64,000 bases of DNA, taken from NCBI GenBank assembly GCA_964247055.1, contig OZ176051.1, forward strand, positions 11,718,001 to 11,782,000, given 5' to 3'. Positions 3,191-64,000 of the stretch are shown piece after piece. The notes below the pieces were generated by a model. It made no database searches. It saw only the letters and a list, made by a program, of their open reading frames with translations, and was not told the origin of the DNA. Source of the DNA: Paragordius varius. Taxonomy: Eukaryota > Animalia > Nematomorpha. The translations under genes were made by a program, and so were the position numbers. Numbering within the stretch: the first letter of the stretch is position 1; every line of letters starts with the position of its first letter.

Positions 3191-4208
3191 TTATTTCTTT
3201 TTGGAATATTTCATCATAATATTTCGATACTTTTCGTCGCTTTTATACCAAAAGAGAAACGGTATCACAAGAGATGGTAGAGTCATAATTGCAAAAGTTA
3301 TCCAATCCATCTAAACAAAATAAATTGTGTGTTAAAATCATATGGACAAAAAATAATTATATTATAGGGTTAATTTAAGTCGGTAAAATTAAAGGAATAA
3401 TTAATTAATTTTACATGCAAATACATGTTAGAACTAGTTAAAACAAATTAAATCAAAACATTTAACTAAGTTTTGGTAATGTATTCAAGAATTATTTACT
3501 TTTTGACTAATTTTTTTAATACACATACTATATCGATATCATTGATCGGAAAATTTATTTAGATGTGTATAAATTACCAAAATCAAACATAAAAAAAGCT
3601 TAAATTAAGCGCAAAAAATAAATTTATAACACAGAAAAATTTAAATTTGTATATACCAAATGGTGGGAATACAGTTTATCAAAATTTTTGGTGGTCATTA
3701 TATTTACGATACCAGGGAAACTTGAGTAGAAATGCTATTTTATAAAATATTCAAACTTTGTGTTTTGGCGAAGACAAAGATTCCAAATAATAAACGTCGG
3801 CTGAAGTTGCATTATATTTTCCAGAAGTTTTTGGTTTTAAAATTACGGAATGTGAAACATTTGATTTACTGAGAAATATATTTAATAATAGAAATAAGAT
3901 AAATAAAATTTACCCATCAATTTTATTCCATTTAACATCAACCAATCCATGTTCCACTGAAAACATTTCGGTATCATATTTATCTTTCAGAGTTATATCA
4001 TAGGCCGGCCTTATGTATATTGTATATTTTAATACTCATCTCCGATATTGAAGATAGTGTATGTTACAACAAAATCTTTGTCTACTGTGAGCAATTTATT
4101 ATGGGAAACTTTGGAGGCTAAAAGATATGGGGGATTAGTTTTGTCGGTTTTTTCTCCGTAAACCAAGTATAACCAAAATAATAAACACGTACGCGTTAAC
4201 ATGTACAT
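3191..4208 (-). CDS. SSR2: Translocon-associated protein subunit beta (TRAP-beta), 5 coding exons: 4208-4036, 4009-3914, 3868-3757, 3734-3657, 3310-3191; 192 aa
   Basis: Manual splicing at GT-AG sites gives one open frame: MYMLTRTCLLFWLYLVYG (signal peptide) ...YLLASKVSHNKLLTVDKDFVVTYTIFNIGDEPAYDITLKD...GLVDVKWNKIDGKSNVSHSVILKPKTSGKYNATSADVYY...HFYSSFPG...FDKLYSHHLMDWITFAIMTLPSLVIPFLFWYKSDEKY...KKK*. This matches TRAP-beta hallmarks (LLASK, NVSH, DW..F..MTLPS..IP...W transmembrane segment). Introns are 26, 45, 22 and 346 nt. Confidence 0.95.
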
Positions 4209-8608: not shown

Positions 8609-9668
8609 TGTAGTTATGATATATATTTGATAGACTTGAATACATACATGAGCCAACTTTAGACTAGACAATTATATATTAGGTTTCGAATACATTTTTG
8701 ACCAACTATATTTTTAAATTGTATCACTTTGGTATGTAACCTGCACACGTTATTTCACCTTGGTTTAAACATACATTTGGCGAGGTCTTTTGTACATTAC
8801 ATTCGCGCATGGAGAAATTAAGTCTAGAAGCATATAATCCCGCAACTAGCTTTGATGACTATATCAATTATATAAATAGAATGTCAAAAGTGAAATTAAT
8901 TCAAGGAAATGATAAAACAAAAAAAACTTGTCATTGGCCTACATCGGTCTATCCCATATTCCAAAGTTGAAGAAATTCTTTTCCTTACTGTTAGAGGAAG
9001 TGGGGTGGGAGGCTTTGGTAGCAGCTGGAAAAAAATATTTGCTCCGACATACCATGTGTTTGCATTGAAGTTCCAGTTAACGCAACTCCGCAGGGAAGCC
9101 ACGGAATCAGTAATGGATTATTTGATTCGGGTAAAGGGATGTGCTCTCTAGTGCAACTTTGGGCAGATGCTATGATAAGAGTCAGAGATGGGTTTGTTGG
9201 ATGGTTACAACTCAAGAGATTGAAAATAGATTTGTTCACGAAATATCCAGATGCAATGTTTGTTGGAAAACCTGTTACGTTGGAGATGGTGGCAAAAACG
9301 GCCATGGCTACGAAAAAGCGGATAGTTGTTAGATTGAACAGGGTTCTGACAATAGGCAGTTGATGATAATAAAAAAGAAGTGTGGAAAGTGTGGGTACGT
9401 GCATGTGATCAACTGGTGTCCCGCTTCAAAAAAAGAATGTTATCGATGCAAAGGACGAGGTCATTTTGGCGGGTGTTGCTGGCGAGTTAATAATTTGAAT
9501 GGTAATAGTTAATAATGAAGCCCGAACGCAAGCAAGTCTGAATGGCCATTGGGTGAGGATGGTGTACGATACCGGAGCTCAATTATCATTGATTGGGAAA
9601 AGCACGTGGATGGAAGGCCGACGCGGGTCCAATAATTGGGTTCAACCATCAAGGTGTGGAGGCTGATG
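8609..9668 (+). mobile_element. Ty3/gypsy (Mag-like) LTR retrotransposon D, 5' part: putative LTR 8609-8775, PBS, gag, N-half of protease (decayed)
   Basis: TG...CA segment followed by TGGCGAGG (8778). ATG at 8809 gives MEKLSLEAYNPATSFDDYINYI, homologous to gag at 47478. Twin zinc knuckle CGKCGYVH...CPASKKECYRCKGRGHFGGCC and protease VYDTGAQLSLI. Frameshifted. Confidence 0.85.
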
Positions 9669-11354
9669 TACTCAAATCTATCATATCTCCTTATCCGATT
9701 CTGAGTCGATCTGGTGCTTTTCTTTCCCTAGGAGGATATCTTCTTTCAGGTTCTTTCTCAGTTGTCGTTTCCGTTTTCTTTTCAACCTGGGTATCTTTCT
9801 CGTTTTCTTTTTCTTTGCTTTGATTTGTTCCTCCCCACTTCCTGATTATGGGTTGTAATATTACATTCATTAGTTTGGGTTATTGTTGGACCCCCATCAT
9901 CTCCCTCTCCGCCCTTCTTGACGCCGGTCGGCCGTAATTGATCCGCATGTTTGCGAAGGGTTCGATTTCCATTTTTTACCGTGTACGAGAGTACCCCTGT
10001 TCTCTCCAAAATTGAACCTTTTCTCCACCTAGCATTAATTTCATTCTTTATCACCTCTTCGTCCAATGTGAAAACTTGATTGGGTATGATGTGGTCATCT
10101 AATTGTTAAGAGGGTGTTTCCCTAGCCCAGGAGAAAGGGGTATTAATATTTCTTTTGGCGGAAAAAGTTATACGGCACTCTTTTGTGGCGCTATGTACGG
10201 CGGAGCGATAACCCCATAGCACTTGATTTATTTTTTAGTCAGGAGGGAGCTTAGAATCCGTTAGCGATTTATAGTGTGCTTTTAAGGTGTAAATGACACG
10301 TTCCTACAGCCCATTTGTTCGTGGATGATAGGGGGCACTAGTGACATGTTTGATGTTTGCTGGTTGCAAGGTATCTTTAAAATCCTTCAATGCAAAATAT
10401 GATGCATTATCGGTAACTATCATTCAGGGAACCCCGGACCTTACACACCAAATTTCTAACCAATGTAATATGTTTGCGGAATTAACATTTCTTAGCAACG
10501 CGACTTCAACACATCTGGAGCTACTATCGATCCAGATATATCCGTTCCCAGATACCCGTATTAAAATTCCATTTGTACGTGGGATTGCTTTTTATGTTAC
10601 TCCGGTTTAACTGACACCCCATACAAGATCTCACATAATTTTCGATATCTTGGTTTATACCTGGCAAGTAAACCCTAGCCTTGGCAGGCGTTTTCATTAC
10701 ATTTGCCCCGGAATATCCAACATGCAAAAATTTTAACGTTTCATTGCGCAAAGCCCTGGGAATAAAAAGACGATCGCCTCAATATAACAAACCATATGAT
10801 TATTGTATTTCGTTTCTTATACTCAATATTGAATTCAAAATTGGAGCTGATCAATCATTATGATTAGCGCTTTTAATGTCATCAAAAACTCATCTCGTAA
10901 ATTTTCTTTAATTCACTGTACGAAGTTGTCTGTGCAAAGTTGATTTGCCTGCTGATTGCTTGCTCCTTAACCTCCTCAGTCGGTTCTTTATACGGTAGAC
11001 GAAATAACCAATCCGCCAAATTTTCAGAACCATTAATATATTGTATATTAAAATTATAATCGGCTGTTCTGAGTAACCATCTTAATGATCTACTATTGTT
11101 AATATTACTCAGAGCTCTCTTAAAGCCAAACAACCTGATTAGAGGTTTATGATCGGTTAATAATACGAACTTTTTGACATACACAAACATTTTAAACTTT
11201 TCCAGCGCACATAAAATTGCCCTAGATTCTTTTTCAATCACCGAGAATTTTTGTTCTGTTCGCACATTTTCGAGACGCAAAACTATCGGACGTTTTCATC
11301 ACTTGACATATGTGATAAGACTGCTCTGAATCCGTCATTCGGAGAGTCTGTTTC
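9669..11354 (-). pseudogene. Ty3/gypsy pol 3' half (RNase H, integrase zinc finger, core and C-terminus), probably of element D, inverted
   Basis: Motifs ETDSP..GFRAVLSH, FSVIEKESRA, LLTDHKPL, H.G....MK...CMGCQ, IVTDNASYF...HVTSAPYHPRTNGL*E and RKHADQLRP, with several stops and frameshifts. Confidence 0.92.
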
Positions 11355-13083
11355 TGTTATGTATTAATTGTTTTTGTTAACTTAATTTAATTGACCTTAT
11401 ATTAGTTAACTTATGAAAATATAATATTATCCTTCTCTCTTACCTTAGTGCATAATATACCTTTGTCCTTGTTACGCTAAAAATATATATTATCTTGGTT
11501 GTGAATGCTTTCACCTAAATACTGTAATATTAAACCTTATGCATATATATAACTTGGTTGTGAATGCTTTCATCTAAATATTGTAATATTTAACCTTATG
11601 CAAAAATGCAACCTTGTCTTAAAACTATATATAATGCAATATATTTTATACACGATATAATAATTCTCTATTCTATAATAAATTCTTTTCGCTTTTTACA
11701 TTGGCGCGGTCATTTATTTGTCGATATTCATTATTATGGAAAAATAATTATTGAGAGTTATAAAATCAAAATAATTTTACGGAATATATTAAATATTTAC
11801 GAAGAAATTTAGTAATTAAAGGAATACAGGATAAAAATGAAAATATTAAAGCCATCTTTCTTGCCCAATTCGGTATTGATAACATTTCTAAAATGAAGCA
11901 ATTCTTTTACCCGCTTAACATTGAAAACATTTCTTGGGAGGAGACTTATGAAGCTGGGGTGAAAATATTTCAACCAACCAAACATACCTTTTTAGCCCGA
12001 TTCGATTTTTTTAGAGCGGAACAATTAGTGGGTGAAGGATTCTTAGAATTTTTAATAAGACTCAAAAATTTAGCCGCCGCATGCGAGTTAAAAGGGAACA
12101 TTGACGAGCTCATACGGGGGGACGTATTTATATATGGGTTGAAGGAAAAAATAGAGACCGAATTACTTAACAGGTACTCGAGGGCACTAGACAACGACAC
12201 ATCAGTGGGATTAAATAAGTTTCAAAATTTGGCTCTAGCGTATGAAAATTCTCGCCTGGAAGCGATCTCAGTGAGGATATATAATAATGATAATATAGAA
12301 AATAATAATAATGATAATAATAATGTTAATAATAATAAAGTTATAATGATGTATTAAAATGAGAGATAATAATGAAATATTTCTGGTTAGACGCAAATCC
12401 AGCGTAAAATCGTGTTTCAAATGCGGTCGCACCCACAAATACGGATACTGCCCAGCTTTTGGGAAGGAATGCTTCAAATGTCACGGAATCATTTTGGAAG
12501 CCAATGCCAAAACAAATTCGCAGGCAATAACAGGTATGTGAATAATATAGTAAAAAAACCTAAAATAAATGTAAAATTACACTCGACCCACGTCAAAATG
12601 TTATTCGACACGGGGGCCGACATATCGTTAATAAGTTTTAGCATGTGGTCTAAGATAGGAAGCCTAAAATAAAACCCATTAATTTTTAAGATAAACACAT
12701 ATGATAATAATCCTTTGCACATAATAGGAGAGACTACTGTAACTCTTGAATTAAATAAAATAACAAAGTGCTTTATTACAAAAAGACATCTTCCTCTAAT
12801 ATTTGGCATGGATTGGATCCAGCTATTCAATATACCATTGCCTAACGAATTATATATTAATGAATTATATCACACAACCGATATTTACAATAAATTTAAG
12901 TCTTTATTTGATAACAAATTGGGTTGTTGGAAAGGGAAACCCATAAAGATATTTTTAGAAAACAATAGTAGGGGCCGGGTATTTCCGGCTACAAGGGTTC
13001 CCTTGGCCTTACAAGAGAAATTAAGTGAAGAGATTAAAAGGCTAGTATCCTTAAAAATTATTGAAAGGGGTTTATGGCCTCAA
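11355..13083 (+). mobile_element. Ty3/gypsy (Mag-like) LTR retrotransposon B, 3'-truncated: 5' LTR 11355-11700, PBS, gag, protease, RT start
   Basis: LTR runs TGTTAT...TTTACA with an internal 59-bp tandem duplication and is homologous to the LTRs at 44022 and 47480. PBS TGGCGCGG at 11702. Gag, knuckles CFKCGRTH...CPAFGKECFKCH, protease LFDTGADISLI. Ends at IKRLVSLKIIERG. Confidence 0.9.
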
Positions 13084-13418
13084 TGATTCCCAGATTTTCA
13101 AGCCTTTTTAATTCACTCTCCACCTTAGACTGGGGGTACCCTCCTAGCTGCTAATCTTTTGGGGATACAACTTTTTTTTGAGAAACAACTTGATGGGTGT
13201 TCCCGTTTAATACCAATACCCTCACAAAATAAATCCTTAAATTTATTTAAATCCACACAACTAACATTCTTTACACAGACAGCATCTGGAAGTTTACATT
13301 GAAATTTTTTTATCCATGGTAACCCAAAAATGTTACCCCAATCCTCCCTGGTAACCATACATTTCAGCTGCTGCTTGACCATACCATTCCATTTAACATC
13401 CACCACGCATTGCCCCAT
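13084..13418 (-). pseudogene. Ty3/gypsy protease C-half and RT N-terminus, probably of element D, inverted
   Basis: MGQCVVDVKWNG...NIFGLPWIKKF...ARRVP / KVESELKRLENLGII. It continues the protease that stops at 9668. Confidence 0.85.
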
Positions 13419-13907
13419 GAATATTATTAATATAATTTGGAATTTTATTCTTATTTCAGTAAGGCCTAAACCCAAAAGCACCGTGAGAATATTACATAAA
13501 TCTATCAAAATATTTATATTTCATTGGAATATTTTTTGTGTGCCGTGTGATTCTATTAACTCTCTCAAAAAGCACCATGGTAACCTTAATATATATTATG
13601 AAGAACAAACATATTTTAGTCTTTTTTACAATGCGTATATTTTAATTATATTTTAGACAGCTAAAATAATATATTTATTCGTAAGCCCAAAACCAAAAGC
13701 ACCATGAGAAACCAGAAATATTTTCTTATAGAATATATATATATATGTATATATTTATCAATATTTTTTTGTGCAAATATTGATGTGTTTTTTGACGTTT
13801 TTTATGTTTGTTAAATATTTTTACAAATAGTTATTGATATTGTAAACTAAAAACAAACTGATTAGATAATATCAAGTATAGCATCCGTTGATTAAAACAG
13901 TGTCTAA

Positions 13908-16255
13908 TCTAATAAAAAATAGAAAATGCTGGCTTTGTGATCTGTTTCCGGAAAATCGGTAGACCTATTTAAATCCAAATGTCAAAAAAATATAATCATT
14001 AATGAATATCCCGATAGCTTCGCCCATTTTTCGAAATAGGCCCCCAGTTCGGGCCCACCCCGTGTAAAAAAAGGATTTTTTTTGAAAACAGAAGTCCACA
14101 AAAATCGTGTAGACAATTTTCCCGAAAACGTGTTGAACCATTCGATTTTAAATATAATTTTTTTTTCGATTGCGCTGAACATAGTAGGCTCGCTTTTTTA
14201 ATTTAGGGCCTTTTTTTACTCGCTCCCCCTATATAATGCCATTTTTTGAAAATACCAAGTCCACAAAAATAATTTTTTGAATCTATTTTTCGCCCAAGGT
14301 ATAAGACCGTATTAATGAAGATTCCAGGCATTCCCTGTTAAAAGGCAAGATTTTTAGTCGTGTGTTTCTTTTATATTGGCTGCTGGGTAAGGAGATACCC
14401 ACTAAAAACTCCCCCGTCATATCGAAATAGCGTGCCTTTGGGGGCTAATATATGAGTTCAATAGCTGTTTAAAATATTATTCGTAACCTGGCAAAAATTT
14501 ATGCCGTGCTATAAAATTAGCCGTTAATAAGGCCCTTGGCGCCCTTAAAAGTGCACCACCATAGAATGATTTTTTATTAAGGCAATTTTTCCAAAAACTA
14601 ATGAGAGCATATGGAATCAATCATGATTCCAGCTATTCTCCATTAAAAAGGCAAAAATTTAATCAAGCGCTTTTTTTGTATCAGCCTCTGGGTAGGTAGC
14701 CGCATAAAACTGCGCCACCATATCGGAATTGCGTTGTTTAGGAGTAAATTTTCAGAAAACTTATCAGGCCATATAAGTTCAATAAGGGCCTGAAATATTA
14801 CCCGTAAAAAGGCAAAAATTTAAGTCGAGCCGTTTTTTGAGCCGTTAATTAGGCCCTTTAGGCCCTAAAAACTGCGCTATCATTGAACTATTATTTAGTT
14901 TTGAAGCCATTCTAAAACTATTAAGAACATATGGAATGAATGATAATTCCAGATATTCCCCTATTTTATCGAACGTTTTATCTATATTTACCTCTGGGTA
15001 AGTGGCTACACGCCTACAACTGCGCCACCATATCAATAGAGCGTGACTTTGGAGGCAAATTTTAGAAAACCTATCAGGCCATATGAGTTCAACAAGGGCT
15101 TGAAATATTACCCGTAAAAAGGCAAAATTTTGGTAGAGCGGTTTTTGAATTACGCCCATGCCCCAATGAGACTCTCTTTTTGGTTTGGAATTTTTCTTAA
15201 ATGCTGCGACAGCATATGGAATTAATCATGAATCCAGGTGTTACCCGAATTAGGCAAAAATTTTAATCGAGCGTTTTTGTTTCTCCCCTGGTTGGGGGGG
15301 TACCCGCGTAACACTGCGTCACATATCAATACAGAATGCCATAGGAGCCAAATTACAGAAAACCTATGGGACTATGTGAGTTCAATAAGAGCCTAAAATA
15401 TTTATCACTCCTTAAAAAAAATATTTAAGTAAAGGGGATTACAATAGTCGCTAAGTAAAATTTTACGCCCTGAAAAATGCGCCGCCATAGAAAAATTTTT
15501 AGTTTTGAAGCAATATTTCCAAGATCATATAGGAACATATGAAATCCATGATAATTCCAGATATTCCCCATATAAAGGCAAAAATTTTGCCTGACGCTTT
15601 TTTATTCCTGCCTCTGGATAAGGAGCTACCCGCCAAAAAATGTGCCACTTTATAAAAATTGTGTTATTTTGGAGCTTATTTACAGAAAATTTATGAAGCC
15701 ATGTGAGCTTATGTAAAGCTTGAAATATCACTCATAACTAGGTAAAAATTAAGGTCAGGCGTTTTTTATCAGCTGTTAATTTGGGGCCTTTATGCCCTAA
15801 AAATACGCCATCATATAACGATTATTTAATGTTAAGGTACCCATGAGACGATGGTATCAAAGATGATTCCAAATAATTGCCCTCTAAAGGCAAAAAATTT
15901 ATCTCAGCGCTATTTTCATATAGGTCTATGGGTAGGGTACCGGTTTAAAAGACGCCATACAACAATGGCTTGTTTTGAAGCTAGTTTTCAAAAAATTTAA
16001 GAAGCCATACGAGTTCAATAAAGGCTTTAAATGATACCCATAAATAAAAAGTTAATTCACACCAGTAAACATTATATTAGTATGAATGCACAGTTTTGAA
16101 AATCCTATGAGATCATAACTATTATTAAATGTTTCGAAATAATCCACATATATGGATCCCAATTTTGTTGATCCCTGTTTTCAAATAGCGACCTCCCCTC
16201 CCAAGAAGTCCGAAGGACTTCCTCGGGCTGCGTAGCAGCACGTGATTTACGCTAG
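13908..16255 (+). mobile_element. Non-autonomous Helitron, full-length copy 3
   Basis: Starts 5' A|TCTAATAAAAAATAG. The 3' end has hairpins GAAGTCC-GAA-GGACTTC and GCTGC-GTA-GCAGC, then ...GCTAG|T. It sits between A and T with no TSD, as is typical of Helitrons. Confidence 0.82.
14299..16064. repeat. Diverged tandem array, unit about 285-320 bp (about 5.7 copies, each with two related halves), inside the Helitron
   Basis: ATGGAAT..ATGATTCCAG landmarks recur at about 14611, 14931, 15216, 15539 and 15851. AGGCAAAAATTT recurs about twice per unit. Confidence 0.85.
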
Positions 16256-25074: not shown

Positions 25075-26361
25075 CTTAAAAAAATAACCAATAAAATAAC
25101 AAAAACAGCAAGCAATAATATCTTATAGTTATATTAATTTGGTTATACATTGCTAAAACTACTAACTCTTCTCATCATTATTTTCCGTTTCAGTTATTCC
25201 AATTGTATTCCATTGCCTGCATAAAGTGGTGGTATAATGTAAATGGTGTGAGATTTCATAATAATAATAATACAAACTAAAACCTTCTTCTCTGCTCTAA
25301 ACACATACATACATATACACACACTTAACAAATTGGTAAATTATCTCTTTTAGAAATCTTATATATATATATTATATATATATAAATAATATCGATAAAT
25401 TTTTATCATATAGTAATTAATAGCGAGGAGAAAGCTCTGTACGTTTAATTATCTTTGCCATTATTATTATTATCCAAATTTTTTTTTGAATGCATTGGTG
25501 GATGACCAGACCGTTCCGCTCCTCTCTTCCTGCAATTATCAAAATTATCATTTTTTTTCGTTTTTTACTCATTTTAATATGATATTTAAACCAAATTCGT
25601 CGGAATGGATATATTTATACACAGAAACAAGCCGTTTTATCTGCATCACAGAGTAGCTCATTAGCGCACGCGGAACAACCATAAAAACTATCAATCCACT
25701 TACTTTTACATTATAATAAAATTAAAAACAGATTTTTATAGCCTCTCTTTCTCTCTCTTACACTCTCACATATACAAACACCGAGTGTTGGTTTGTATTC
25801 AACTGCTATTCTATACTTATCCAACACTTAATAGATATAAATGAGTTAGGTATATTTTCGCATTTTATTTGATATAAACCAATAATGAATAATATTTAAT
25901 AATTGCTGATTCTAAACACATACACCACCTACTTAATTTTCTGTGAATGCGGTGGTTTTCGCTGCTCGTTAAATGAACCTTGCCTAACAAACAAATATAT
26001 GTGTATATGCCGAATTTTTTTAAAATTTCACCTAAATATATTTTATGATAGGACCAGGTCAATTTATCCAAATCCATTTTTTATTTACCATATTTCCTAT
26101 CTTTTTTCAATAATTATCAAAACAATCAGTAAGGTTTGAATTAATCATGCAAAGCAAACATCTATCACCAATTAACCAAATTAGTTATCTGTCATACCAC
26201 CTAATATGAAACAAACAGTGTATCATTAGTTCAACATCCTAGAATTTTTCTCACATCAAATAAATTGGGCCAAAATTTGAATTTTTCTCCCGTCTACTTC
26301 TCCGTTCTGAGTCTTTTAACCTCTACCTTGCCCATGAACGTGTATGTTGTGATGATTGACT

Positions 26362-28476
26362 ATGATATATACATGTTATTACCATGAAGATACAGCAAAG
26401 AAAACTACATTTACTCCTGTTGAGATTGATAAATCCCCACATAACACATATTTTAAACATTTTTCAACTCAAAAGCTTGATAAATTACTTTTAAAATTCA
26501 AAGAGTCTGAAAAAACTCTATATTTAGACACATCTAACATCTCAAATTTATCAAAACTCTCAGACCATCAAATCCTTTATACTGATAAACTAAGCGTACT
26601 ACCTCTACCCCATACAAAAAATTATTTGGGTACAAATAATTCTCAACAAAAATATCTCGTAACTAAAACTGAAAATAAAAATAGGGTTATTTCACTTGTC
26701 CTCCTAATTGCATTGTTTAGTCAATCTTTCTTTGTGCCAATGGTCAACGCATTTAATCATACTTCCCGTAACAAACCCTCACTACCACCGTTTAATAGAA
26801 AACCCACCTCTACTTTCATAATAATCGTAGAGAAAGGGTTTGGGATACAACCATTTTTAAACAGGCATTACCATGGTCACAGTGACTTATTTTACTTCAT
26901 TTTACCGCATAGGTTAAAAGGCATTGTGTTTCCTAGAAATCGAGCATATTCGAAGATTCGACTCAAAAATTTTAATAATTTTTTCTACGAAAAACAGAAT
27001 TTAATGCAAATTGATATCCATGATGTTAGGGAGGGAAAATATATAGCAAACCTAATAATTTGTAATGTATGTGAGGTCCTATCGCAAAAACCCTACTCAA
27101 ACTGTGTCTTCCATAAATCTAACTATCCAAATCGAAACGGAAAAAATATTTTTATCTGTAGAAGTATAGCTTGGAACGTCCTAAATAATGATCTATCCCC
27201 AATACCGCTATCGATATATACCGTTACATTAGTGAAAAATAGTATGGAGGCCGTGAATTATGGTCCAAAATCGCATTTACAAAAGTACCCTTACATAACC
27301 TACTATACTAAACAGACTGATGATATTTACTCCCTAACAAGACTTCGCGATCAAAACTTTTATTCACCCAGCTCAAAGTTTAACAATCTTTTTTATACAA
27401 AAAACCGATACACGGGGCCACACATATTCCATTTTTGGAATTGTGATCAGCATAAGCATAACACGGCGAATCAATATCAACCTAAAACACAAAAAATTTT
27501 AACGTATAATATACCTTGGAAGAAAATTTTTCTGGTTACCAAATATGGCACCACCTATGAAGATGAAAGTATTGATAAAATCATTTCAAAATCTTCATAT
27601 CCTGATAATAATGAGGAAATGTTTGGCGCAATGATGTTGAAAAGAGAATATGATTTTATTTCAAAATTAAAACATAAATGGCCCAATAATATAAAACAAC
27701 AGTTACTCTGCATAGCTAATTTAGAAAAATCAAATGCATATGCACCCACTAAGCTAGGTTTGAGAAAAGCACACAATGCATCAAATATATTGAATAATTT
27801 TCCTCGATCTAAAAGACACATGTTACATTATTTTAAACAACAAATGACCATTGATCAAAACTATCCGGAATATGGTATATCGTATCCATATTATAATTAT
27901 CCCATGAGGAGTTACGGAAAACGCGCTTATGTTAATAAAACAATTTCGACATTCAGTACCGCATCAAAGTTAGTTAATAGTCAAGAAACAACAACCACAT
28001 CCCCACCTTTGTCTAAATTTCGAATCAGTGAATCGACTATAAATGCTTTTTGTCATTATATCGGCCAGCAATCTAATGTTAATCAAAATAATTTGGGTAC
28101 TCCAACAACCTTATCCGATGAAGCCCTTGTATATCTCAAAAATGTCAAACTTTCATACTGTGATCGTATACCGATTACTCTTCTTATTCAGGGAATACTT
28201 TCGTCAAATAAACCATACCTATCCACAAATCAAACAACACAAAACGATTATACATCATTGGTTAATTCATTCAATAATTCCAACGAAAGCGAAATCGAAA
28301 ATGACACACCATCTAAATTGGATTTTGAATGGGTTAACGCTTGCATCCACCACATGACAAAAATTAATGAAAATGATCTAGCTATCAAACAATCCATACA
28401 ATCAATTCAAAGCATAATGAGTCGAACAGATTGCATAGATGGGTACTCTATCACATCAAAATGCAATGATTGTGAG
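26362..28476 (+). CDS. NALF1: NALCN channel auxiliary factor (NALF/FAM155/Mid1-like), coding exon 1 of 3
   Basis: 705-codon open exon from the first in-frame ATG (26362). Hydrophobic anchor RVISLVLLIALFSQSFFVPMVNA near aa 109-130. The end, LSYCDRI...ACIHHM...DCIDGYSITSKCNDCE, matches the first half of the FAM155 cysteine-rich domain. Donor GAG|GTAATT at 28476/28477, phase 0. The symbol denotes the family; orthology to NALF1 versus NALF2 is not resolvable. Confidence 0.88.
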
Positions 28477-28590
28477 GTAATTAGATTTAAATTTTTTAAA
28501 TAACACAGTGCGCACATAAATTCAGGATAAATATATTTATAAGGAAAATGGTTAACCGTTTCTTTCCATAAATTTAAATATATCATAAAT

Positions 28591-40574: not shown

Positions 40575-41205
40575 TATGATTGTTGGAAATATTAATTGAG
40601 GGTGAAAATATATGGTTAATTTTTGAAAACATCAAGATGTTATTCAGTATTTGATTTTGGAAATATTATTTGATTTTTGAAAACATATAATTTTATTGTT
40701 TAAAATATTATTTGATTGTTGAATACGGTTGATTTTTGAAAACATTAGGATGTTATTGAGTAATATATTTTGATTTTGGAAATATTATTTATTGTTGAAA
40801 AAATATGGTTTCTTGTAAATACTAAAATATTATTGGGAATAAAATTTATTTGTTGGAAATAGTATTTGATGTTGGATATATTATTTGATAGTTGAAAAAA
40901 TATGATTGATTGTTGGATATACAAAAAAATTATTGTGTAATAAAATTTGTTGTAGGAAATATTATTTATTGTTGAAAAAATATGGTTTCTTATACTAAAA
41001 TATTATTGAGGAATAAAATTTGATTGTTCGAAATATTATTTGATAGTTGAAAAAATATGATTGATTGTTGGATATACTAAAATATTATTGGGTATTATAT
41101 ATTTTGATTGTTAAAAATATTATTTTATTGATGAAAATTTAAGAATGATTTGGAATAATATATTATATGACATAATATTTTAATTGTTGGAATTGTTGGG
41201 ATAAT
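40575..41205 (+). repeat. AT-rich satellite, degenerate edge block (GATTGTTGG orientation)
   Basis: Degenerate GATTGTTGGAAATA / AAAAATATGGTT subunits. Confidence 0.85.
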
Positions 41206-44021
41206 TTAGTTTTCCAACAATTATTCATAATTTTTTCAACAATCAAATAATATTTAAACAATCAAAATATATTACCTAAAAATATTTTAGTATTTCTCAA
41301 GCATATTTCTTCAATAATTAAATAATATTTTGAACAATAAAAATTTATTACCCAATAATGTTTTAATATTCCCAAAAATCAACCATATATTTTCAACAAT
41401 TAAAATATATAACCCAATAATATTTTAGTATTCGTAACAATCACACATATTTTTACAATCAAATAATATTTCCAACACTCAAATTTCGCAATAATATTTT
41501 AAGATTTCCAACAATCAACCATATTTTTTCATCAATCAAATAATATTTCCAATCAAAACATATAACCTAATAATATTTTATCATTTCCAACAATCAACCA
41601 TATTTTTTCAACAATCTAATAAAATTTTTAACAAACAAAATTTTATACTCAAAATTTTTGCATTTCGAACAATCAACCATATTTCGTCAACAATCTAATA
41701 AAATTTTGAACAATCAAAATATATTACCCAATAATGTTTTAGTATTTCCAACATTTAACCATATTCTTTCAACAATGAAATAATATCTCCAACAATCAAA
41801 ATATATTAGCCATTATTTTTTAGATTTCCAACAACCAAATAATATTTCCAACAAATAAAAGTATTATTCAATAATATTTTAGTATTTCCAACAATCAATT
41901 ATATTTTAACAATTAACCAACAATCAAAATATATTACTAACAAATTTTTATATTCCCAACAATAAACCATATTTTTTCAACAATCAAATAATATTTCCAA
42001 CAATCAAACATTATTACCCAATAATATTTTAGTATTTCCATCAATCAACCATATTTTTTAACAATTAATATTTCCCCATAAATCAACCATATTTTTACAA
42101 CAATAAAATAATATTTAAAACAATCAATTTTTATTACCCAATAAAATTGAAGTATATCCAACAATCAACCATATTTTTTAACAATCAAATAATATTTCCA
42201 ACAATCAAATTGTATCACTCAATAATAATTTACTATTTTCAAAAATCATATTTTAAATCAAACATTATTACCCAATAATATTTTAGTATTTCCAACAATT
42301 AACCACATATTTTTAACAATCCAATAATTATCCCAACAATCAAAATATATTAACCATTATTTTTTATATTTCCAAGATCAACCATATATTTTCACCAATC
42401 AAATAATATTTAATCAAAATATATTACCCAATAATATTTTAGTATTTGCTAGAAACCATATTTTTTCAATAATCAAATAATATTTCCAACAATCAAATTA
42501 CCCAATAATGTTTTAGTATATCCAACAATCAACCATATATTTTCAACAATGAAATAATATTTAAACAATCAAAACATATTACCCAATAATATTTTAATAT
42601 TGACAAGAAACCATATTTTTTCAACAATCAAATAATATTTTCAACAATGAAATATTATTAAGCAATAATATTTTAGTATTTACAACAATCCACCATATAA
42701 TTTCAACATGCAAATTATATTTACAACAATCATAATATATTACCCAAAAAATTTTGGTATATCCAACAATCAACCATATTATTAAACAATGAAATAATAT
42801 TTCTAACCATAAAAATATATTATCCAAGAATATTTAAGTTTTTCCAACAATCAACCATATATTTTCAAAAATCAAATAATTATCCCTACAATCAAAATAT
42901 ATTACTCAAAATCTTTTTGTATTTCCAACAATAAACCATATTTTTTCAACAATCAAATAAAATTTCCAACAATCACATCTTTATACTCAAGACTTTTTAG
43001 TATTTCCAACAATCAACCATATTTGTCAACAATCTAATAAAATTCCGATCAATCAAAATATAATACCCAAGAATAATTTAGTATTTCCAACAATTAACCA
43101 CATATTTTTAACAATCAAATAATAAATCCATAAATCAGCCATATTTTTACAACAAAAAAATAATATTAACAATCAATTTTTATTATCCAATAAGATTGAA
43201 GTATATCCAACAATCAACCATATTTTTTAACAATCAAATAATATTTCTAACAATCAAATTTTATTACCCAAATAACTTTAGTTTATCCAACAATCAACCA
43301 TATATTTTCCATAAACAAAATTTCCAACAATCAAATTGTATCACTCAATACTACTTAGTATATTTCCAACAATCAACCATATTTTTTCAACAATCAAATA
43401 ATATTTTCAACAATCAAATTTTAGTACCCAATAAAATTTAAGTATATCCAACAATCAACCATATTTTTTAACAATTAATATTTCCATAAATCAACCATAT
43501 TTTTACAACAATAAAATAATATTTAAAACAATCAATTTTTATTACCCAATAAAATTGAAGTATATCCAACAATCAACCATATTTTTTAACAATTAAATAA
43601 TATTTCCAACAATCAAATTGTATCACTCAATAATAATTTACTATTTCCAAAAATCATATTTTTTCCACAATCAAATAATATTTCCAACAATCAAACATTA
43701 TTACCCAATACAATTTTAGTATTTCCAACAATCAACCATATTTTTTCAACAATCAAATAATATTTCCAACAATGAAATTTTATTACCCAATAATATTTTA
43801 GTCCCTACAAACAAAGTTTTTTTAACAATCAAATAATATTTCCAACAATCAAATATAATTTCTTATGAATATTTTAGTATTTCCAACAATTAACCACATA
43901 TTTTTAACAATCCAATAATTATCCCAACAATCAAAATTTATTAACCATTATTTTTATATTTCCAACGATCAACCATATATTTTGAACAAAAATAATATTT
44001 CCAACAATCAAAATATATTAC

Positions 44022-47000
44022 TGATATAAAAAATGATGTATATATTTATTTACTATAATAAAAAAACTGAATAATATAATATGATCTGCGTGTTACAATG
44101 ATTTCTTATATACATTAGGAAATTTGATTATTGCATTCACAAGGATAAAGTTGTCTGATTTAAACGTTGTTAAAGATAATAAGTATAAATAAAATAATTT
44201 GCATTCACAACCAAGGTAATATATATTTTTAACGTAACAAGGACAAAAGTGTATTATGCACTAAAAAAGAGAAGGATAATTTGCGTATGATGATAACCCT
44301 TTTAACATACCTTCTTTTTTAAGCTTGATATCGGTCGGGTGGCTTTCAATATCGAATCGGGTACCGGCGAGTCGTAGTAGGAGAAGTGTCACTTGTTTAC
44401 ACGGGAGTATTCTCACTTGAAGGCGCACTTTCTGATTCCGGATTCTCCTCGATGTTTTCAGGGGTTCTTATTTCATGTTTCGTGGGATGTTTTCGGAGGT
44501 TATTATCATTGTTGTTAAAGTTTGCGGATGATGAGTTAGGAATGCTGATTGATACTTCCGGGTTATCTAGATTTTTAGTCTTTTCCTCACTTCTCCCGTC
44601 TTCTCCTTCGGCCGACAAATCCCTGCGATTCCTTAATTGATCAGCATGTTTGCGGATAATTTTGCCATTGTCGTTGACATTGCACGATAACCATCCCGTT
44701 CTGTCGACGATTTTCCCCTCCTCCAACCAGAACACAATTCATTCTTGATATATACCTTTTGCCCCTTTTCAAACTCCTACGAATGTCGGGAGTATCCATG
44801 AATTCGTTGGGTTTCGTTTTCATCTATGTAAATGGGCTTTGCATAGTTCTTTTAAAAACAAATGCGCGGGGGTCTCCTTCGTGGAACTGTGATGCGTGTT
44901 TCGGTAAGCCCATAAGATTTGGCTTAATTTTCGCACTGGATTTGCGGAAAGTGGGGTTCACTTTGAATAATGATTTTTTAGAGTGTAAATTACCCTCTCT
45001 ACCAACCCATTTGTTCGGGGGTGGTAGGGAGCTGATGTGACGTGTTTTATTTTAGAGGAAGCTAAAGTTCCCTCAAACTCCCCCGATTTAAAATAAGAGC
45101 CGTTATCAGTAACCACCACTTTTGGGTACCCATACCGGCAAAAACAGGTTTCTAAAAACTTTAGAATATTACCTGTATTCACAGAGCGTAACGTCTCTAC
45201 CTCAACCCAGCGGGTGCAATGATCAATTAGTACCACCCAGTATAAATTGTCAATGGGTCCGGCGATATCTAGGTGGCCGTTCCCATATGGTTGTATTTTC
45301 GTTCCATTGATAGGTGGGATTTTCGGGTACATTTGGGCGCAGCCTTTGGCAATTTTGGCAACTACGCACCCATTTTTTGATATCTTGGCTCAAATCGGGC
45401 CAATAAACCTTTTCACGGCTTAATAGTTTCATGGTTAGTATTCCCGGATGGCCACTATGCAGGTATCTTAAAATATCTGGCTTAATTTTTTTCGGGATTA
45501 TTACCTGATCTCCCACAAATAATAGATCTTATGCATCCTCAATTTCATTTTTTATTGCGATGAAAGGCTTGACCAGGGGGTCCGTCCAATTATTAGACCT
45601 TAGGACTACTCTTAATTTTGCTATCGTAGGATCCTTTATATACTCTTGATAGATAATTTCTCTATTTAAATATAATTCGTTGGACCAAATCAAATGAACA
45701 TTGCTACTTTCATCGTCTTTCTCAAAACCCATCGGCTCCTGGTTTTCAATGGGTAGTCTCGATAGGCAGTCAGCTATGTTTTCTATACCAGGCTGATATT
45801 CTATGTTAAAATCGAATATCGATGTTCTAGTTATCCAGCGTACTAGTTTACAATTATTAATTTTACTTAGATCTCTTTGTGGCCCAAATAGTTTCACTAA
45901 AGGTTTGTGGTCCGTTTGTATTATAAATTTTCTGCCATACAAAAAGGTTTTAAACTTCTCTAACGCTATTAGGATAGCTTTTGCTTCTCGCTCAATTACT
46001 GAATAGTTTTCTTCAGCCTGAGAGCATTTTTTTGACGTGTAGCCGATCGGGCGATTACCCGCTGTTGTTCTATTTGATAAAATAGCACCGTATCCCGACA
46101 TTGACGCGTCGGTTTCCAAGACTATAGGTAGTTTGGGATTATACGGATGCAAGGAACTACTCTGGCAGATCAAGTCTTTAGCTTTTTTGAATATCGAATC
46201 ATGCGTTAGCGTCCAACACCATTTTTGTTTGTTACCTGCTAATTTATGTAGTTCTCCCATTGAAATGCTTAGGGAAGGGATGAATTTTGCATGAAAATTA
46301 AGTAAACCCAAAAATGATCTAAGAGTGGTTTTGTTGGTCGGGGTCGGGCACTCTTGGATGGCTTTAATTTTATTTGGGGAGGGTTTAATGCAATTTTCAG
46401 AAATAATATGACCAAGATATTCCACAGATGGTTGAAAAAGTTTTATTTTATCTTTGCGCAATTTTAATCCCATTGTACGATTAATATTGTATGCATGTAT
46501 GAAAATATTATTGTTATGAAAATCTAGTGCTGGTTTGCCTAGACGGCACCAGTTTTTATAATTTATGATTGAAATATCGGCACCCGTATCAATAATCATT
46601 TCAATAGGAAAATTATTTATTTTAGGAACGATTTGGGTTTTTTTTGTCTTATTAAAAAGGGAATATGCTTTAAACGTTACCTTACAACATCGAGCAAAGT
46701 GGATTGAACGATGGCATCTATAACATTCTTTCCCATAGGCAGGGCAATGTCCCAACGTATGAGTCCTCCCACATTTTGTGCAGGTTCGTCGGTTATTATT
46801 ACTATTGTTGCTTTTTGATTGGTGAAGTGTGGCTATTTCGTTTATTTCACCATTACTACTGTGGTTCTTATTATTGTTACTTTTATTATCATTATCAATA
46901 TTGATGGACAGCACTTCTGTATTCGTTAGTACATTTCGTGCCTTCTCATGTGATAAAGCAATATTTACCACAGTGTTTAGAGAAACGGGAGCCCCGTTTT

Positions 47001-47765
47001 CTAAAGCCTCCGGGAACCGTGTAAATAGCTCCATCTCCACTTCTTGCTCATCTAATCCCGCGATGAATACATCTCTGATGTGCTCGTCAATGTTTGACGA
47101 GAACCGGCAGTGGATGGCCATTTGTTTAACTCTTAACAAGAATTCTGTGAACGTTTCCATTCTCCCTTTCTTCATTTTAATTAAAACAAAACGCGAAGAA
47201 AAAATATTCCTTGAGGGGGAGAAGATTTTTATACCGGCGTTTAATAGATCTGGGAATGGTATGTTGTCTATTGCTTGTGGATAGAAATAATTTTAAATTT
47301 TATTAATATTTTCGATTTCACCGAAAGCCAACAAACATGCTTTCATATTTTCATCGGTGGCTGCGACATTCTTGACCTCCAAATTGCGTTTAATATATGT
47401 AATATAATTTGTAAACTCAACATTTGGATTAAAACATGATAAATTAATTTTTTCCATAGCCTCGAATAGCCGCGCCACTTTATATAAAAAAGGATATATA
47501 TATTTATTTAGTATAATAAAAAAACTGAATAATATAATATGATCTGCGTGTTACAATGATTCCTTATATACATTAGGAAATTTGGTTATTGCATTCACAA
47601 GGATAAAGTTGCCTGATTTAAACGTTGTTAAAGATAATAAGTATAAATAAAATAATTTGCATTCACAACCAAGGTAATATATATTTTTAACGTAACAAGG
47701 ACAAAAGTGTATTATGCACTAAAAAAGAGAAGGATAATTAGCGTATGATGATAACCCTTTTAACA
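44022..47765 (-). mobile_element. Ty3/gypsy (Mag-like) LTR retrotransposon A, both LTRs intact, RT core deleted, non-functional
   Basis: 286-bp LTRs at 44022-44307 and 47480-47765 (8 differences counted by eye). 5-bp TSD ATTAC, PBS TGGCGCGGCTATTCGAG, PPT AAAAAAGAAGGTA. Gag, twin CCHC, protease IIDTGADIS, RT thumb, RNase H ETDAS...TDHKPL and integrase HHCC plus LDIAG...TDNG...NGLVER. Confidence 0.96.
44397..47478 (-). pseudogene. gag-pol pseudogene of element A
   Basis: One gag-PR-RH-IN frame broken by in-frame stops (47293-47295, 45529-45531, 44958-44960 and about 44825) and frameshifts near 45275 and 44750. Confidence 0.92.
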
Positions 47766-48494
47766 ATTACCTAATAATATTTTAGTATTCCCAACAATCA
47801 ACCATATTTTTTCAATAATTAACTAATATTTTTAACAATCAAATTTTATTACCCAATAATGTTTTAGCATTTACAAGAAACCATATTTTTTGAACAATCA
47901 AATAATATTTCCAACAATCAAAATATTTATCCAATAATATTTTTATATTTCCAACAATCAATTATATAATTTCAACAATATAATTATCTCAACAATCAAA
48001 ATATATTACCCAACAATTTTTAATATTTCCAACAATAAACCATATTTCAACAATCAAATAAAATTTCCAACAATCAAAAATCTTTACTCAAGAATTTTTA
48101 GTATTAGCAACAATCAACCATATTTAGTCAACATTCTAATAAAATTTTGAACAATCAAAATATATTACCCAATAATATTTTAGTATTTCCAACAATTAAC
48201 CACATACTTTTAACAATCCAACCAACAATCAAAATATATTAACCATTATTTTTATATTTTCAACGATCAACCATATATTTTCAACAATCAAATAACAACA
48301 ATCAAAACATATTACTATTTTAGTATTTACATAAAACCATATTTTTTCAACAATCAAATAATATTTCCAACAATGAAATTTTATTACCAATAATATTTTA
48401 ATATTTACAACAATCAACCATAATAAAAGCAAATATTATTTCCAACAAAAAAATATATTACCCAAGAATTTTTGAGTATTTCCAAAATTTCAAC

Positions 48495-51400
48495 TTGGAA
48501 ATATTATTTGATTGTTGAAAAAATGTGGTTGATTGTTGATAATACTAAAATATAATTGGTTAAAAAATTTTATTGTTATAAATATTATATTATTGTAAAA
48601 ACATATCGTTGATTATTTAAAATACTAAAATAATATTGGGTAATAAAATATGTTGTTGGAAATATAATTTGATTGTTTATAAAATATGGTTGTATGTTGG
48701 AAATACTAAAATATTATTGGGTAATAAAATTTCATTTAAAATATTATTTGATTGTTAAAAAAATATGGGTGATTGTTGGAAATACTAAAAAATTCTTGGG
48801 TAATATATGTAGATTGTTGGAAAACTAAAATATTATTGGTTAATATATTTTGATTGTTGGGAATATTATTTGATTGTTTAAAAAATATGGTTGAGTTTTG
48901 GAAATACTAAAATATTCTTAGGTAATATATTTTGATTGTTGGAAATAATAAAATATTTGTGGGTAATATATTTTGATTGTTGGGAGTTTTATTTGATTGT
49001 TGAAAAAATATGGTTGATTGTTGGAAATACTAAAATATTATTGGTTAATATATTAAATTGTTGGGAATATTATTTGATTGTTTAAAAAATATGGCTGATT
49101 GTTGGAAATACTAAAATATTCTTGGGTAATATATGTTGATTGTTGGAAAACTAAAATATTATTGGGTAATATATGTTCATTGTTGGAAAACTAAAATATT
49201 ATTGGTTAATATATTTTGATTGTTGGCAATATTATTTGATTGTTTAAAAAATATGGGTGAATGTTGGAAATACTATAATATTATTGGGTAAGTTAAAAAA
49301 ATATGGTTGATTGTTGGAAATACTAAAATATTCTTAGGTAATATATTTTGATTGTTGGAAATAATAAAATATTTGTGGGTAATATATTTTGATTGTTGGG
49401 AGTTTTATTTGATTGTTGAAAAAATATGGTTGATTGTTGGAAATACTAAAATATTCTTGGGTAATATATGTTGATTGTTGGAAAACTAAAATATTATTGG
49501 GTAATATATGTTCATTGTTGGAAAACTAAAATATTATTGGTTAATATATTTTGATTGCTGGTAATATTATTTGATTGTTTAAAAAATATGGGTGAATGTT
49601 GGAAATACTATAATATTATTGGGTAAGTTAAAAAAATATGGTTGATTGTTGGAAATACTAAAATATTCTTAGGTAGTATATTTTGATTGTTGGAAGTACT
49701 AAAATATTCTTAGGTAGTATATTTTGATTGTTGGAAGTAATAAAATATTTGTGGGTAATATATTTAGATTGTTGGGAATATTATTTGATTGTTGAAAAAA
49801 TATGGTTGATTGTTGGAAATGCTAAAATATTTTTGGGTAAGTTAAAAAAATATGGTTGATTGTTAGAAATAATAAAATATTTATGGGTAATATATGTTAA
49901 TTGTTGGAAAACTAAAATATTATTGGTTATAATATTTAGATTGTTGGGAATATTATTTGATTGTTGAAAAAACATGGTTGATTTTTGGAAATACTAAAAT
50001 ATTCTTGGGTAATATATTTTGATTGTTGGAAATAATAAAATATTTGTGGTTAATATATTTTGATTGTTGGGAATTTGATTGTTAAAAAATATGGGTGATT
50101 TGTTGGAAATACTAAAATATTCTTAGGTAATATATTTTGATTGTTGGAAATAATAAAATATTTGTGGGTAATAAATTTTGATTGTTGGGAGTTTTATTTG
50201 ATTGTTAAAAAATATGGGTGATTGTTGGAAATACTAAAATATTCTTAGGTAATATATTTTGATTGTTGGAAATAATAAAATATTTGTGGGTAATATATTT
50301 TGATTGTTGAAAGTTTTATTTGATTATGAAAAAATATGGTTGATTGTTGGACATACTAAAAAATTCTGGGGTAATATATGTTGATTGTTAGAAAACTAAA
50401 ATATTATTGGTTAATATATTTAGATTGTTGGGAATATTATTTGATTGTTGAAAATATATGGTTGATTGTTGGAAATGCTAAAATATTTTTGGGTGAGTCA
50501 AAAAAATATGGTTGATTGTTGGAAATAATAAAATATTCATGGGTACGTTGAAAAAATATGGTTGATTGTTGGACATACTAAAAAATTCTTGGGTAATATA
50601 TGTTGATTGTTGGAAAACTAAAATATTATTGGTTAATATATTTAGATTGTTGGGAATATTATTTGATTGTTGAAAAAATATGGTTGATTTTTGGAAATAC
50701 TAAAATATTCTCGGGTAATATATTTTGATTGTTGGAAATAATAAAATATTTTTGGGTAATATATTTTGATTGTTGGGAGCTTTATTTGATTGTTGAAAAA
50801 ATATGGTTGATTGTTGGAAATACTAAAATATTCTTAGGTAATATATTTTGATTGTTGGAAGTACTAAATTATTTGTGGGTAATATATTTAGATTGTTGGG
50901 AAAATTATTTGATTGTTGAAAATATATGGTTGATTGTTGGAAATACTAAAATATTCTTAGGTAATATATTTTGATTGTTGGAAGTACTAAATTATTTGTG
51001 GGTAATATATTTAGATTGTTGGGAATATTATTTGATTGTTGAAAATATATGGTTGATTGTTGGAAATAATAAAATATTTGTGGGTAATATATTTTGATTG
51101 TTGAAAGTTTTATTTGATTATGAAAAAATATGGTTGATTGTTGGACATACTAAAAAATTCTGGGGTAATATATGTTGATTGTTAGAAAACTAAAATATTA
51201 TTGGTTAATATATTTAGATTGTTGGGAATATTATTTGATTGTTGAAAATATATGGTTGATTGTTGGAAATGCTAAAATATTTTTGGGTGAGTCAAAAAAA
51301 TATGGTTGATTGTTGGAAATAATAAAATATTCATGGGTACGTTGAAAAAATATGGTTGATTGTTGGACATACTAAAAAATTCTTGGGTAATATATGTTGA

Positions 51401-63400: not shown

Positions 63401-64000
63401 GATTGTTGAAAAAATATGGTTGATTGTTGGAAATACTAAAATATTATTGGTTAATATATTATATTGTTGGGAATATTATTTGATTGTTTAAAAAATATGG
63501 TTGATTGTTGGAAATACTAAAATATTATTGGTTAATATATTATATTGTTGGGAATATTATTTGATTGTTTAAAAAATATGGCTGATTGTTGGAAATACTA
63601 AAATATTCTTGGGTAATATATGTTGATTGTTGGAAAACTAAAATATTATTGGGTAATATATGTTCATTGTTGGAAAACTAAAATATTATTGGTTAATATA
63701 TTTTGATTGTTGGTAATATTATTTGATTGTTTAAAAAATATGGGTGAATGTTGGAAATACTATAATATTATTGGGTAAGTTAAAAAAATATGGTTGATTG
63801 TTGGAAATGCTAAAATATTCTTAGGTAATATATTTTGATTGTTGGAAATAATAAAATATTTGTGGGTAATATATTTTTATTGTTGCGAGTTTTATTTGAT
63901 TGTTAAAATATATGTGTGATTGTTGGAAATACTAAAATATTCTTAGGTAATATATTTTGATTGTTGGAAATAATAATATATTTGTGGGTAATATATTTTG
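48495..64000 (+). repeat. Homogenised AT-rich satellite array (41+41+20+21 = 123-bp and 82-bp monomers, with higher-order repeats); runs off window end
   Basis: For example GATTGTTGGAAATAC at 52558, 52681 and 52804 (period 123). Variant markers repeat at 794, 2804 and 583 bp. Confidence 0.97.

Follow-up and report, generated by a model that had tools for sequence, protein, structure and literature searches.

The SSR2 (TRAP-beta) gene of the horsehair worm Paragordius varius appears to be interrupted by introns of only 26 and 22 nt. The gene lies on the minus strand at positions 3191-4208 of a 64,000-nt stretch of contig OZ176051.1 (assembly GCA_964247055.1, positions 11,718,001 to 11,782,000 of the forward strand), which we call the window and whose numbering is used below unless a contig (C) or locus (L) is named. 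Judged by its sequence, 3191-4208 is the genome's only TRAP-beta gene, and it is intact and predicted to encode a 192-residue type I membrane protein of the endoplasmic reticulum. The 26-nt and 22-nt segments within it are very probably genuine U2-type GT-AG spliceosomal introns, as are two further segments of 45 nt and 346 nt; our certainty is higher for the 26-nt intron and somewhat lower for the exact boundaries of the 22-nt intron. Introns of this size are also seen in a BiP-type HSP70 gene and a CCT3-like gene elsewhere in the assembly, which supports the view that tiny introns are a property of the genome and not of SSR2 alone.

Gene model and splice junctions of SSR2

The SSR2 gene consists of five exons running from an ATG at 4208 to a TAA at 3191, and a TAA in the same frame precedes the ATG by 9 nt (Table 1). 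The exons add up to 579 nt, or 192 codons plus the stop, and none of the five contains a stop or a frameshift. The introns, which measure 26, 45, 22 and 346 nt from first to fourth, have GT-AG termini in all four cases, and they are distinctly poorer in GC than the exons (13-19% vs 30-34%). The topology, read by eye, comprises a hydrophobic N-terminus in exon 1 and a hydrophobic stretch with a KKK end in exon 5. No notable repeats were seen within the gene. An earlier, sequence-only reading of the window had placed the two shortest introns at 4035-4010 (26 nt) and 3756-3735 (22 nt), and these coordinates, together with the sequences given for them, are exact. The 45-nt intron of that reading is located at 3913-3869, while the fourth intron, at 3656-3311 (346 nt), was not mentioned there.

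Table 1. Exons and introns of SSR2 and tiny introns of the BiP-type gene. Matches are to Pfam PF05753.
Feature	Position	Strand	Length (nt)	Profile positions	Score	Remarks
SSR2 exon 1	4036..4208	-	173	10-48	24.1 bits, E 2.6e-5	ATG 4208-4206; putative signal peptide and start of lumenal domain; ends in phase 2
SSR2 intron 1	4010..4035	-	26			GT..AG; phase 2; 15% GC; minus-strand letters GTATTAAAATATACAATATACATAAG
SSR2 exon 2	3914..4009	-	96	50-81	15.7 bits, E 0.01	
SSR2 intron 2	3869..3913	-	45			GT..AG; phase 2; 13% GC; 3' end TTTCTCAG
SSR2 exon 3	3757..3868	-	112	84-116	27.3 bits, E 2.8e-6	
SSR2 intron 3	3735..3756	-	22			GT..AG; phase 0; 14% GC; minus-strand letters GTTTGAATATTTTATAAAATAG
SSR2 exon 4	3657..3734	-	78			26 codons; placed by frame, length continuity and 33% GC
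SSR2 intron 4	3311..3656	-	346			GT..AG; phase 0; 19% GC; ordinary size
SSR2 exon 5	3191..3310	-	120	147-176	26.3 bits, E 5.6e-6	Putative transmembrane helix and lysine-rich tail; TAA 3193-3191
BiP intron	L025:1224-1246		23			Splits the Cys codon in the near-invariant GIDLGTTYSC/VGV motif
BiP intron	L025:1479-1506		28			Directly after FPYT

The SSR2 exons were searched singly, and the frame tests across the junctions were computed separately. Exons 1, 3 and 5 each exceed the curated cut-off of the Pfam family PF05753 (TRAP_beta; 22.4 bits) unaided, while exon 2 falls below it. The exons are collinear on the profile, and such ordered matches are far beyond chance. Between exons 1, 2 and 3, the profile positions that are absent correspond exactly to the split codons, with no surplus at the joints, and the 30 profile positions between the anchors at 116 and 147 equal the 30 residues of the model (exons 3, 4 and 5 contribute 3, 26 and 1, respectively). 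In the alignments with solved structures, residues 2-30 of exon 2 correspond to residues 54-83 of mammalian TRAP-beta, residues 2-31 of exon 3 to residues 87-116 (E 4.5e-4), and residues 1-30 of exon 5 to residues 148-177 of the human protein (E 1.1e-6). Across intron 1, both the Pfam profile (48/49/50) and the human residues (51/52/53) are unbroken. In human TRAP-beta numbering, intron 1 falls in codon 52 and intron 2 in codon 85, both in phase 2, whereas introns 3 and 4 are in phase 0, after about residue 122 and between residues 147 and 148, respectively.

A genome profile search of the 110.6-Mb assembly returned a single TRAP-beta match, which is the SSR2 locus at 3191-4208. The TRAP-gamma partner subunit is clearly encoded in the genome (117.1 and 80.6 bits), and TRAP-alpha gave a weak match of 21.8 bits, under its cut-off. 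An exact-sequence look-up of the exon-1 open reading frame (ORF) found no record, and a profile-free comparison of exon 1 (57 aa) with a large protein collection gave 0 matches at E<=0.001.

For each junction, we enumerated all GT/GC..AG pairs nearby (within ~60 nt for intron 1) that keep the frame without stops. Intron 1 has a single such solution, of 26 nt, and intron 2 likewise has a single nearby solution, of 45 nt. The retained segments lead to early stops: a TAA after 2 codons for intron 1, a TAA after 1 codon for intron 2 and a TGA after 1 codon for intron 3, as the sequence-only reading had claimed for introns 1 and 3 in calling the stops immediate. Read-through of intron 4 meets a TAA after 10 codons. 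A 36-nt intron 3 had been dismissed in the same reading, and the next AG (3722-3721) indeed gives no stop-free frame. That reading's central claim, an intact TRAP-beta gene that needs the removal of 26 and 22 nt, holds up in that PF05753, the structure alignments and the junction enumeration agree.

Several points weigh against this view of the gene. The removal of the SSR2 segments in RNA is something we infer from the DNA. For intron 3, the enumeration left three frame-keeping, stop-free solutions, of 22, 49 and 55 nt, and exon 4 by itself had no significant match in the Pfam or structure searches. Searches with exon 1 found no TRAP-beta protein from the same species or a close relative in public collections, and none of the searches of such collections, with other genes included, turned up a protein of this species. 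In addition, short GT..AG segments that bridge open frames were counted in the window plus 200 kb of C2:9.70-9.90 Mb (264 kb in total); at 25, 35 or 40 open codons, they were no more frequent than segments bounded by control dinucleotide pairs, a result that is uninformative and not negative because chance frames of this length abound and transposon ORFs predominate. Finally, a TAAT- or CTAAT-like element lies 6-12 nt before the AG in five of the eight short introns that we treat as verified (the SSR2, BiP and CCT3-like examples); it may be the branch site, yet it is weak in a background of 75% A+T, and the introns number only eight.

The ambiguity at intron 3 can be narrowed down. The intron might instead measure 55 nt (GT 3775 to AG 3721) or 49 nt (GC 3769 to AG 3721), which would shorten the protein by 11 or 9 residues, respectively; both options keep the frame free of stops, and what they would remove is part of a poorly conserved linker, next to the exon for which there is no significant match of its own. 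However, either option breaks the fit of 30 residues to 30 Pfam positions between 116 and 147 and deletes residues 31-34 of exon 3, which both the Pfam and the PDB alignment cover. The GC content of the extra pieces removed is 42% and 36%, as against 14% in the 22-nt segment, and the rival donors, GTCTTC and GCCAAA, are unlike those of all eight verified introns (GTA or GTT, then A/T), which the GTTTGA donor of the 22-nt intron does resemble. The 22-nt intron was therefore chosen because it keeps the profile length, because the extra pieces of its rivals are exon-like in GC and because its donor fits, and we consider a longer intron 3 unlikely.

Tiny introns in other genes and their ancestry

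The BiP-type HSP70 gene at locus L025 (C4:12481068-12485117), which at 80-85% identity to many phyla is too conserved to place the genome taxonomically, also carries tiny introns (Table 1), in addition to a further, later intron of 69 nt. The 23-nt intron is at the same codon and phase as a 1869-nt intron of the spider Stegodyphus, where the Cys codon is split after TG, and a 507-nt intron of Trichoplax sp. H2 splits the BiP Cys codon at the same point. Similarly, the 28-nt intron is at the same codon and phase as a 1215-nt Stegodyphus intron (K/V joint there, T/I here). This sharing of codon and phase with long spider and Trichoplax introns marks the BiP micro-introns as shrunken ancient introns. 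The sequence-only reading had proposed the same ancestry for the tiny introns of SSR2, from a putative match of their splice points to vertebrate SSR2 intron positions; here the case is one of analogy with BiP, by which they may likewise be shrunken ancestral introns.

As an aside on the Trichoplax sp. H2 locus (NOWV01000026.1, L035), the deposited BiP model P0116 omits the exon for VGVFKNGRVEII. Since this exon is present in the DNA, from L035:1136, the omission in the deposited model is an annotation error.

The CCT3-like gene starting at L015:4458 (C2:9804458; L015:4458-4852 corresponds to C2:9804458-9804852) has first, second and third introns of 27, 28 and 36 nt, all in phase 0, and introns of hundreds of bases after the third. 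The Pfam profile is unbroken across the 36-nt intron (17-37, then 38-69). We also observed, within a single open frame of 590 codons, several of the gene's later Pfam matches whose profile coordinates overlap; these overlapping pieces may be repeated exon edges inside introns.

In SSR2, BiP and the CCT3-like gene, the tiny introns are all located within the first ~400 bases of coding sequence and are followed by longer introns. The same pattern bears on whether the SSR2 segments might be insertions in a decaying pseudogene or assembly errors. Hairworm genomes have been reported to have lost many universal genes, and the weak TRAP-alpha match could be taken in the same sense. On the other hand, the five SSR2 exons contain neither stops nor frameshifts and still resemble TRAP-beta, the locus is the sole TRAP-beta locus of the genome, and GT and AG bound each segment precisely where the frame resumes. 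Moreover, the pattern recurs in CCT3 and splits a near-invariant motif of the essential BiP, and insertions of 22-26 nt with such ends are not a known type of assembly error. We consider this explanation very unlikely.

The segments could also be removed from DNA and not from RNA, as germline-limited internal eliminated sequences (IESs) excised in the soma, as in ciliates. Certain nematodes, relatives of the hairworm lineage, carry out programmed DNA elimination, and A+T-rich segments of 22-28 nt resemble the shortest IESs of Paramecium. However, the boundaries here are GT..AG and not TA..TA, and no two TA dinucleotides at a spacing of 26 or 22 nt span either segment in the sequence. Known elimination in animals takes large blocks, not intragenic segments, and the BiP positions match ordinary spliceosomal introns of other animals in codon and phase. 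Of the alternatives weighed here, excision from DNA is the most improbable, and spliceosomal introns remain our preferred reading of the segments.

Tiny size is not the genome-wide median, in that most of the sampled exon gaps are 50-1200 nt and intron 4 of SSR2 itself is 346 nt. Among nine CCT-type genes, only one listed exon pair is separated by ~26 nt, the majority of gaps being 50-1200 nt; the gene tables for the proteasome and HSP70 show similar gaps, again mostly 50-1200 nt. These three sets of gap tables begin at the start of the Pfam domain and consequently miss the extreme 5' ends of genes, which is where the tiny introns of CCT3 sit. In the 64-kb window, a search for further tiny-intron genes gave junk-like frames only.

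Splice signals, machinery and related short-intron systems

The eight verified introns share a minimal set of signals. All eight have a donor of GTA or GTT followed by A/T, and none has a G at +5; the acceptor is [A/T/C]AG and the interior is very A+T-rich in every case. In each of the eight, the length is not a multiple of three or there is an in-frame stop inside. The absence of a polypyrimidine tract, claimed in the sequence-only reading for all three short SSR2 introns, is correct for the 26- and 22-nt introns and not for the 45-nt intron, which ends in a short pyrimidine run, TTTCTCAG.

The splicing machinery encoded in the genome looks ordinary. The U1 snRNA (124.3 bits) has an intact 5' end, ACTTACCTG, and the U2 snRNA (177.7 bits) has an intact branch-site-pairing box, GTGTAGTA. 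The exons of U2AF2 are collinear on contig C8, and SF1 is encoded (74.9 bits). Since U1 and U2 are canonical and U2AF2 and SF1 are present, nothing indicates a remodelled spliceosome, and the suggestion that this animal has a spliceosome adapted to micro-introns was not borne out.

The snRNA genes are clustered: a U1 gene cluster at C6:565000-634000 holds about 13 copies, and the U2 gene clusters at C3:257000-528000 hold about 30 copies, many of them degenerate, with two further U2 groups on C2, 170-270 kb beyond the window. A U12-type assignment of the introns was rejected, as the 5' ends GTATTAAA and GTTTGAAT are unlike [AG]TATCCTT and the branch site TCCTTAAC is not present.

The unfitness of the 5' ends for U12 together with the ordinary machinery favours U2-type intron definition, as has been proposed for myxobolids and Dicyema (PMC13644364). 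In the mechanism that we propose, the tiny introns would belong to a genome-wide class of 21-28 nt, located mainly among the first introns of genes and standing beside ordinary introns that are hundreds to thousands of bases long. They would most likely be ancient introns that deletions have cut down almost to the smallest size that the spliceosome can accept, and they would probably be recognized by intron definition, through ordinary U2-type splicing with minimal signals. The signals used would be GTW at the donor, WAG at the acceptor and, 6-12 nt before the 3' end, a branch element that is A-rich or resembles TAAT, with no pyrimidine tract.

Introns of this size are known from other lineages. 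A survey (2026) of 51 animal genomes found introns <30 bp in Myxobolidae and Dicyema only, both with compact genomes, and predicted more cases in parasites (PMC13644364). Nematomorphs are unmentioned in the main text of that survey (PMC13644364). The list of groups given in the sequence-only reading (ciliates, nucleomorphs, microsporidia and dicyemids) is out of date to the extent that the myxobolid Myxozoa have to be added (PMC13644364). Our literature search found no paper tying hairworms to short introns.

In Dicyema, intron positions are conserved despite shrinkage. The introns described here resemble those of Dicyema japonicum in belonging to a parasitic animal, in being GT-AG introns of <30 nt and in having a 5' signal of approximately GTa, no pyrimidine tract and a few A before the AG (PMC13644364). 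They differ in that nearly all introns are tiny in Dicyema, whereas the tiny introns described here share their genes with others of 346 nt to >1 kb, and in that the genome is a 110-Mb genome rich in retrotransposons and satellite DNA, from the nematomorph lineage.

The myxobolids Henneguya, Thelohanellus and Myxobolus have median intron lengths of 22-27 bp, at conserved positions between conserved exons (PMC13644364). They retain canonical U2 snRNA and U2AF (PMC13644364), and U1, U2, U2AF2 and SF1 appear canonical here as well. In contrast, tiny is the genome-wide median there, while the tiny introns here are an apparent minority near gene starts. Since the phylum also differs from that of the myxobolids, the tiny introns would have originated independently.

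Parasitic flatworms (Gyrodactylus salaris and tapeworms) are similar in that their intron lengths are bimodal, a discrete mode of very short introns existing next to the long ones. A short mode of ~32 bp dominates intron positions 1 and 2 in G. salaris (PMC4040987). This agrees with the short early introns observed here, where introns 1-3 of SSR2 are short and intron 4 is long and introns 1-3 of the CCT3-like gene are tiny. The flatworm mode of ~32-36 bp is, however, above 30 bp, compared with the verified 22-28 nt here, and the phylum is different.

Outside animals, ciliates (Paramecium, ~25 nt; Stentor, 15-16 nt) and the Bigelowiella nucleomorph have introns in the same size range with GT..AG ends and an A+T-rich interior. 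Most of their lengths are non-multiples of three or include an in-frame stop, a property that all eight verified introns share. These protists have uniformly tiny introns, whereas the genome described here is that of an animal, uses standard stop codons and has introns of mixed sizes. A protist source of the DNA, ciliate or otherwise, was dismissed, given the standard TAA stop of SSR2, proteins of animal type and a best match to Gordionus.

Genome setting and significance

The genome comprises 110.6 Mb in 44 contigs with about 27% GC and contains Ty3/gypsy-type elements and large satellite arrays. The Gordionus genome also has about 27% GC and measures 288 Mb (bioRxiv 10.1101/2023.06.26.546503). 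The best match of PSMB6 is to the nematomorph Gordionus sp. m RMFG-2023 (76% identity, 368 bits), with other animals at <=57%. In Paragordius varius, PSMB6 is one uninterrupted exon (L032:1444-2118; C4:8319802-8320476), while the Gordionus ortholog takes up ~2 kb for 246 codons (L033:3001-5019). This difference between the two loci suggests that the Paragordius varius lineage lost the introns of the gene or replaced it with a retrocopy.

Elsewhere in the window, a large satellite that is rich in A+T and has nested periods of about 20, 41, 82 and 123 nt occupies 40600-44020 and 47770-64000, in two oppositely oriented blocks (GC skew -0.75 and +0.78) that flank a GC-richer Ty3/gypsy-type pol remnant. 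These long terminal repeat (LTR) retrotransposon remains, at 44397-47284, contain a 548-aa ORF with protease and RT-RNase H (45529-47175, minus strand) and an integrase fragment at 44958-45332. An older, broken LTR element at 8800-15200 retains a gag zinc knuckle, a protease motif and RNase H. The plus-strand 715-codon open frame at 26356-28503 has no Pfam match and lies in a gene-poor region of 27% GC. No Rfam or tRNA matches were found in the 64-kb window.

For a long time, introns shorter than about 30 nt were held to be impossible in animals. The SSR2 gene is a well-supported instance of a probably unpublished feature at the level of the lineage and not a discovery in its own right. The minimum intron sizes in standard gene finders and spliced aligners would break genes with tiny introns, and genes broken in this way could inflate the 'rampant gene loss' and the low BUSCO scores reported for hairworm genomes.

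Tentatively, horsehair worms or a close relative may be a third independent animal lineage with introns <30 nt, in the form of a discrete 21-28-nt class that is confined to the first few introns and stands beside kilobase introns in a repeat-rich, non-compact genome. If so, intron miniaturisation would not be a by-product of genome compaction but a process tied to intron position; cap-proximal intron-definition splicing, with no need of a pyrimidine tract, would be one example. If 22-28-nt introns at ancient positions adjoin long introns in the same genes, shrinkage would be separable from genome compaction, and the animal would provide a natural system for the minimal signals of U2-type splicing.

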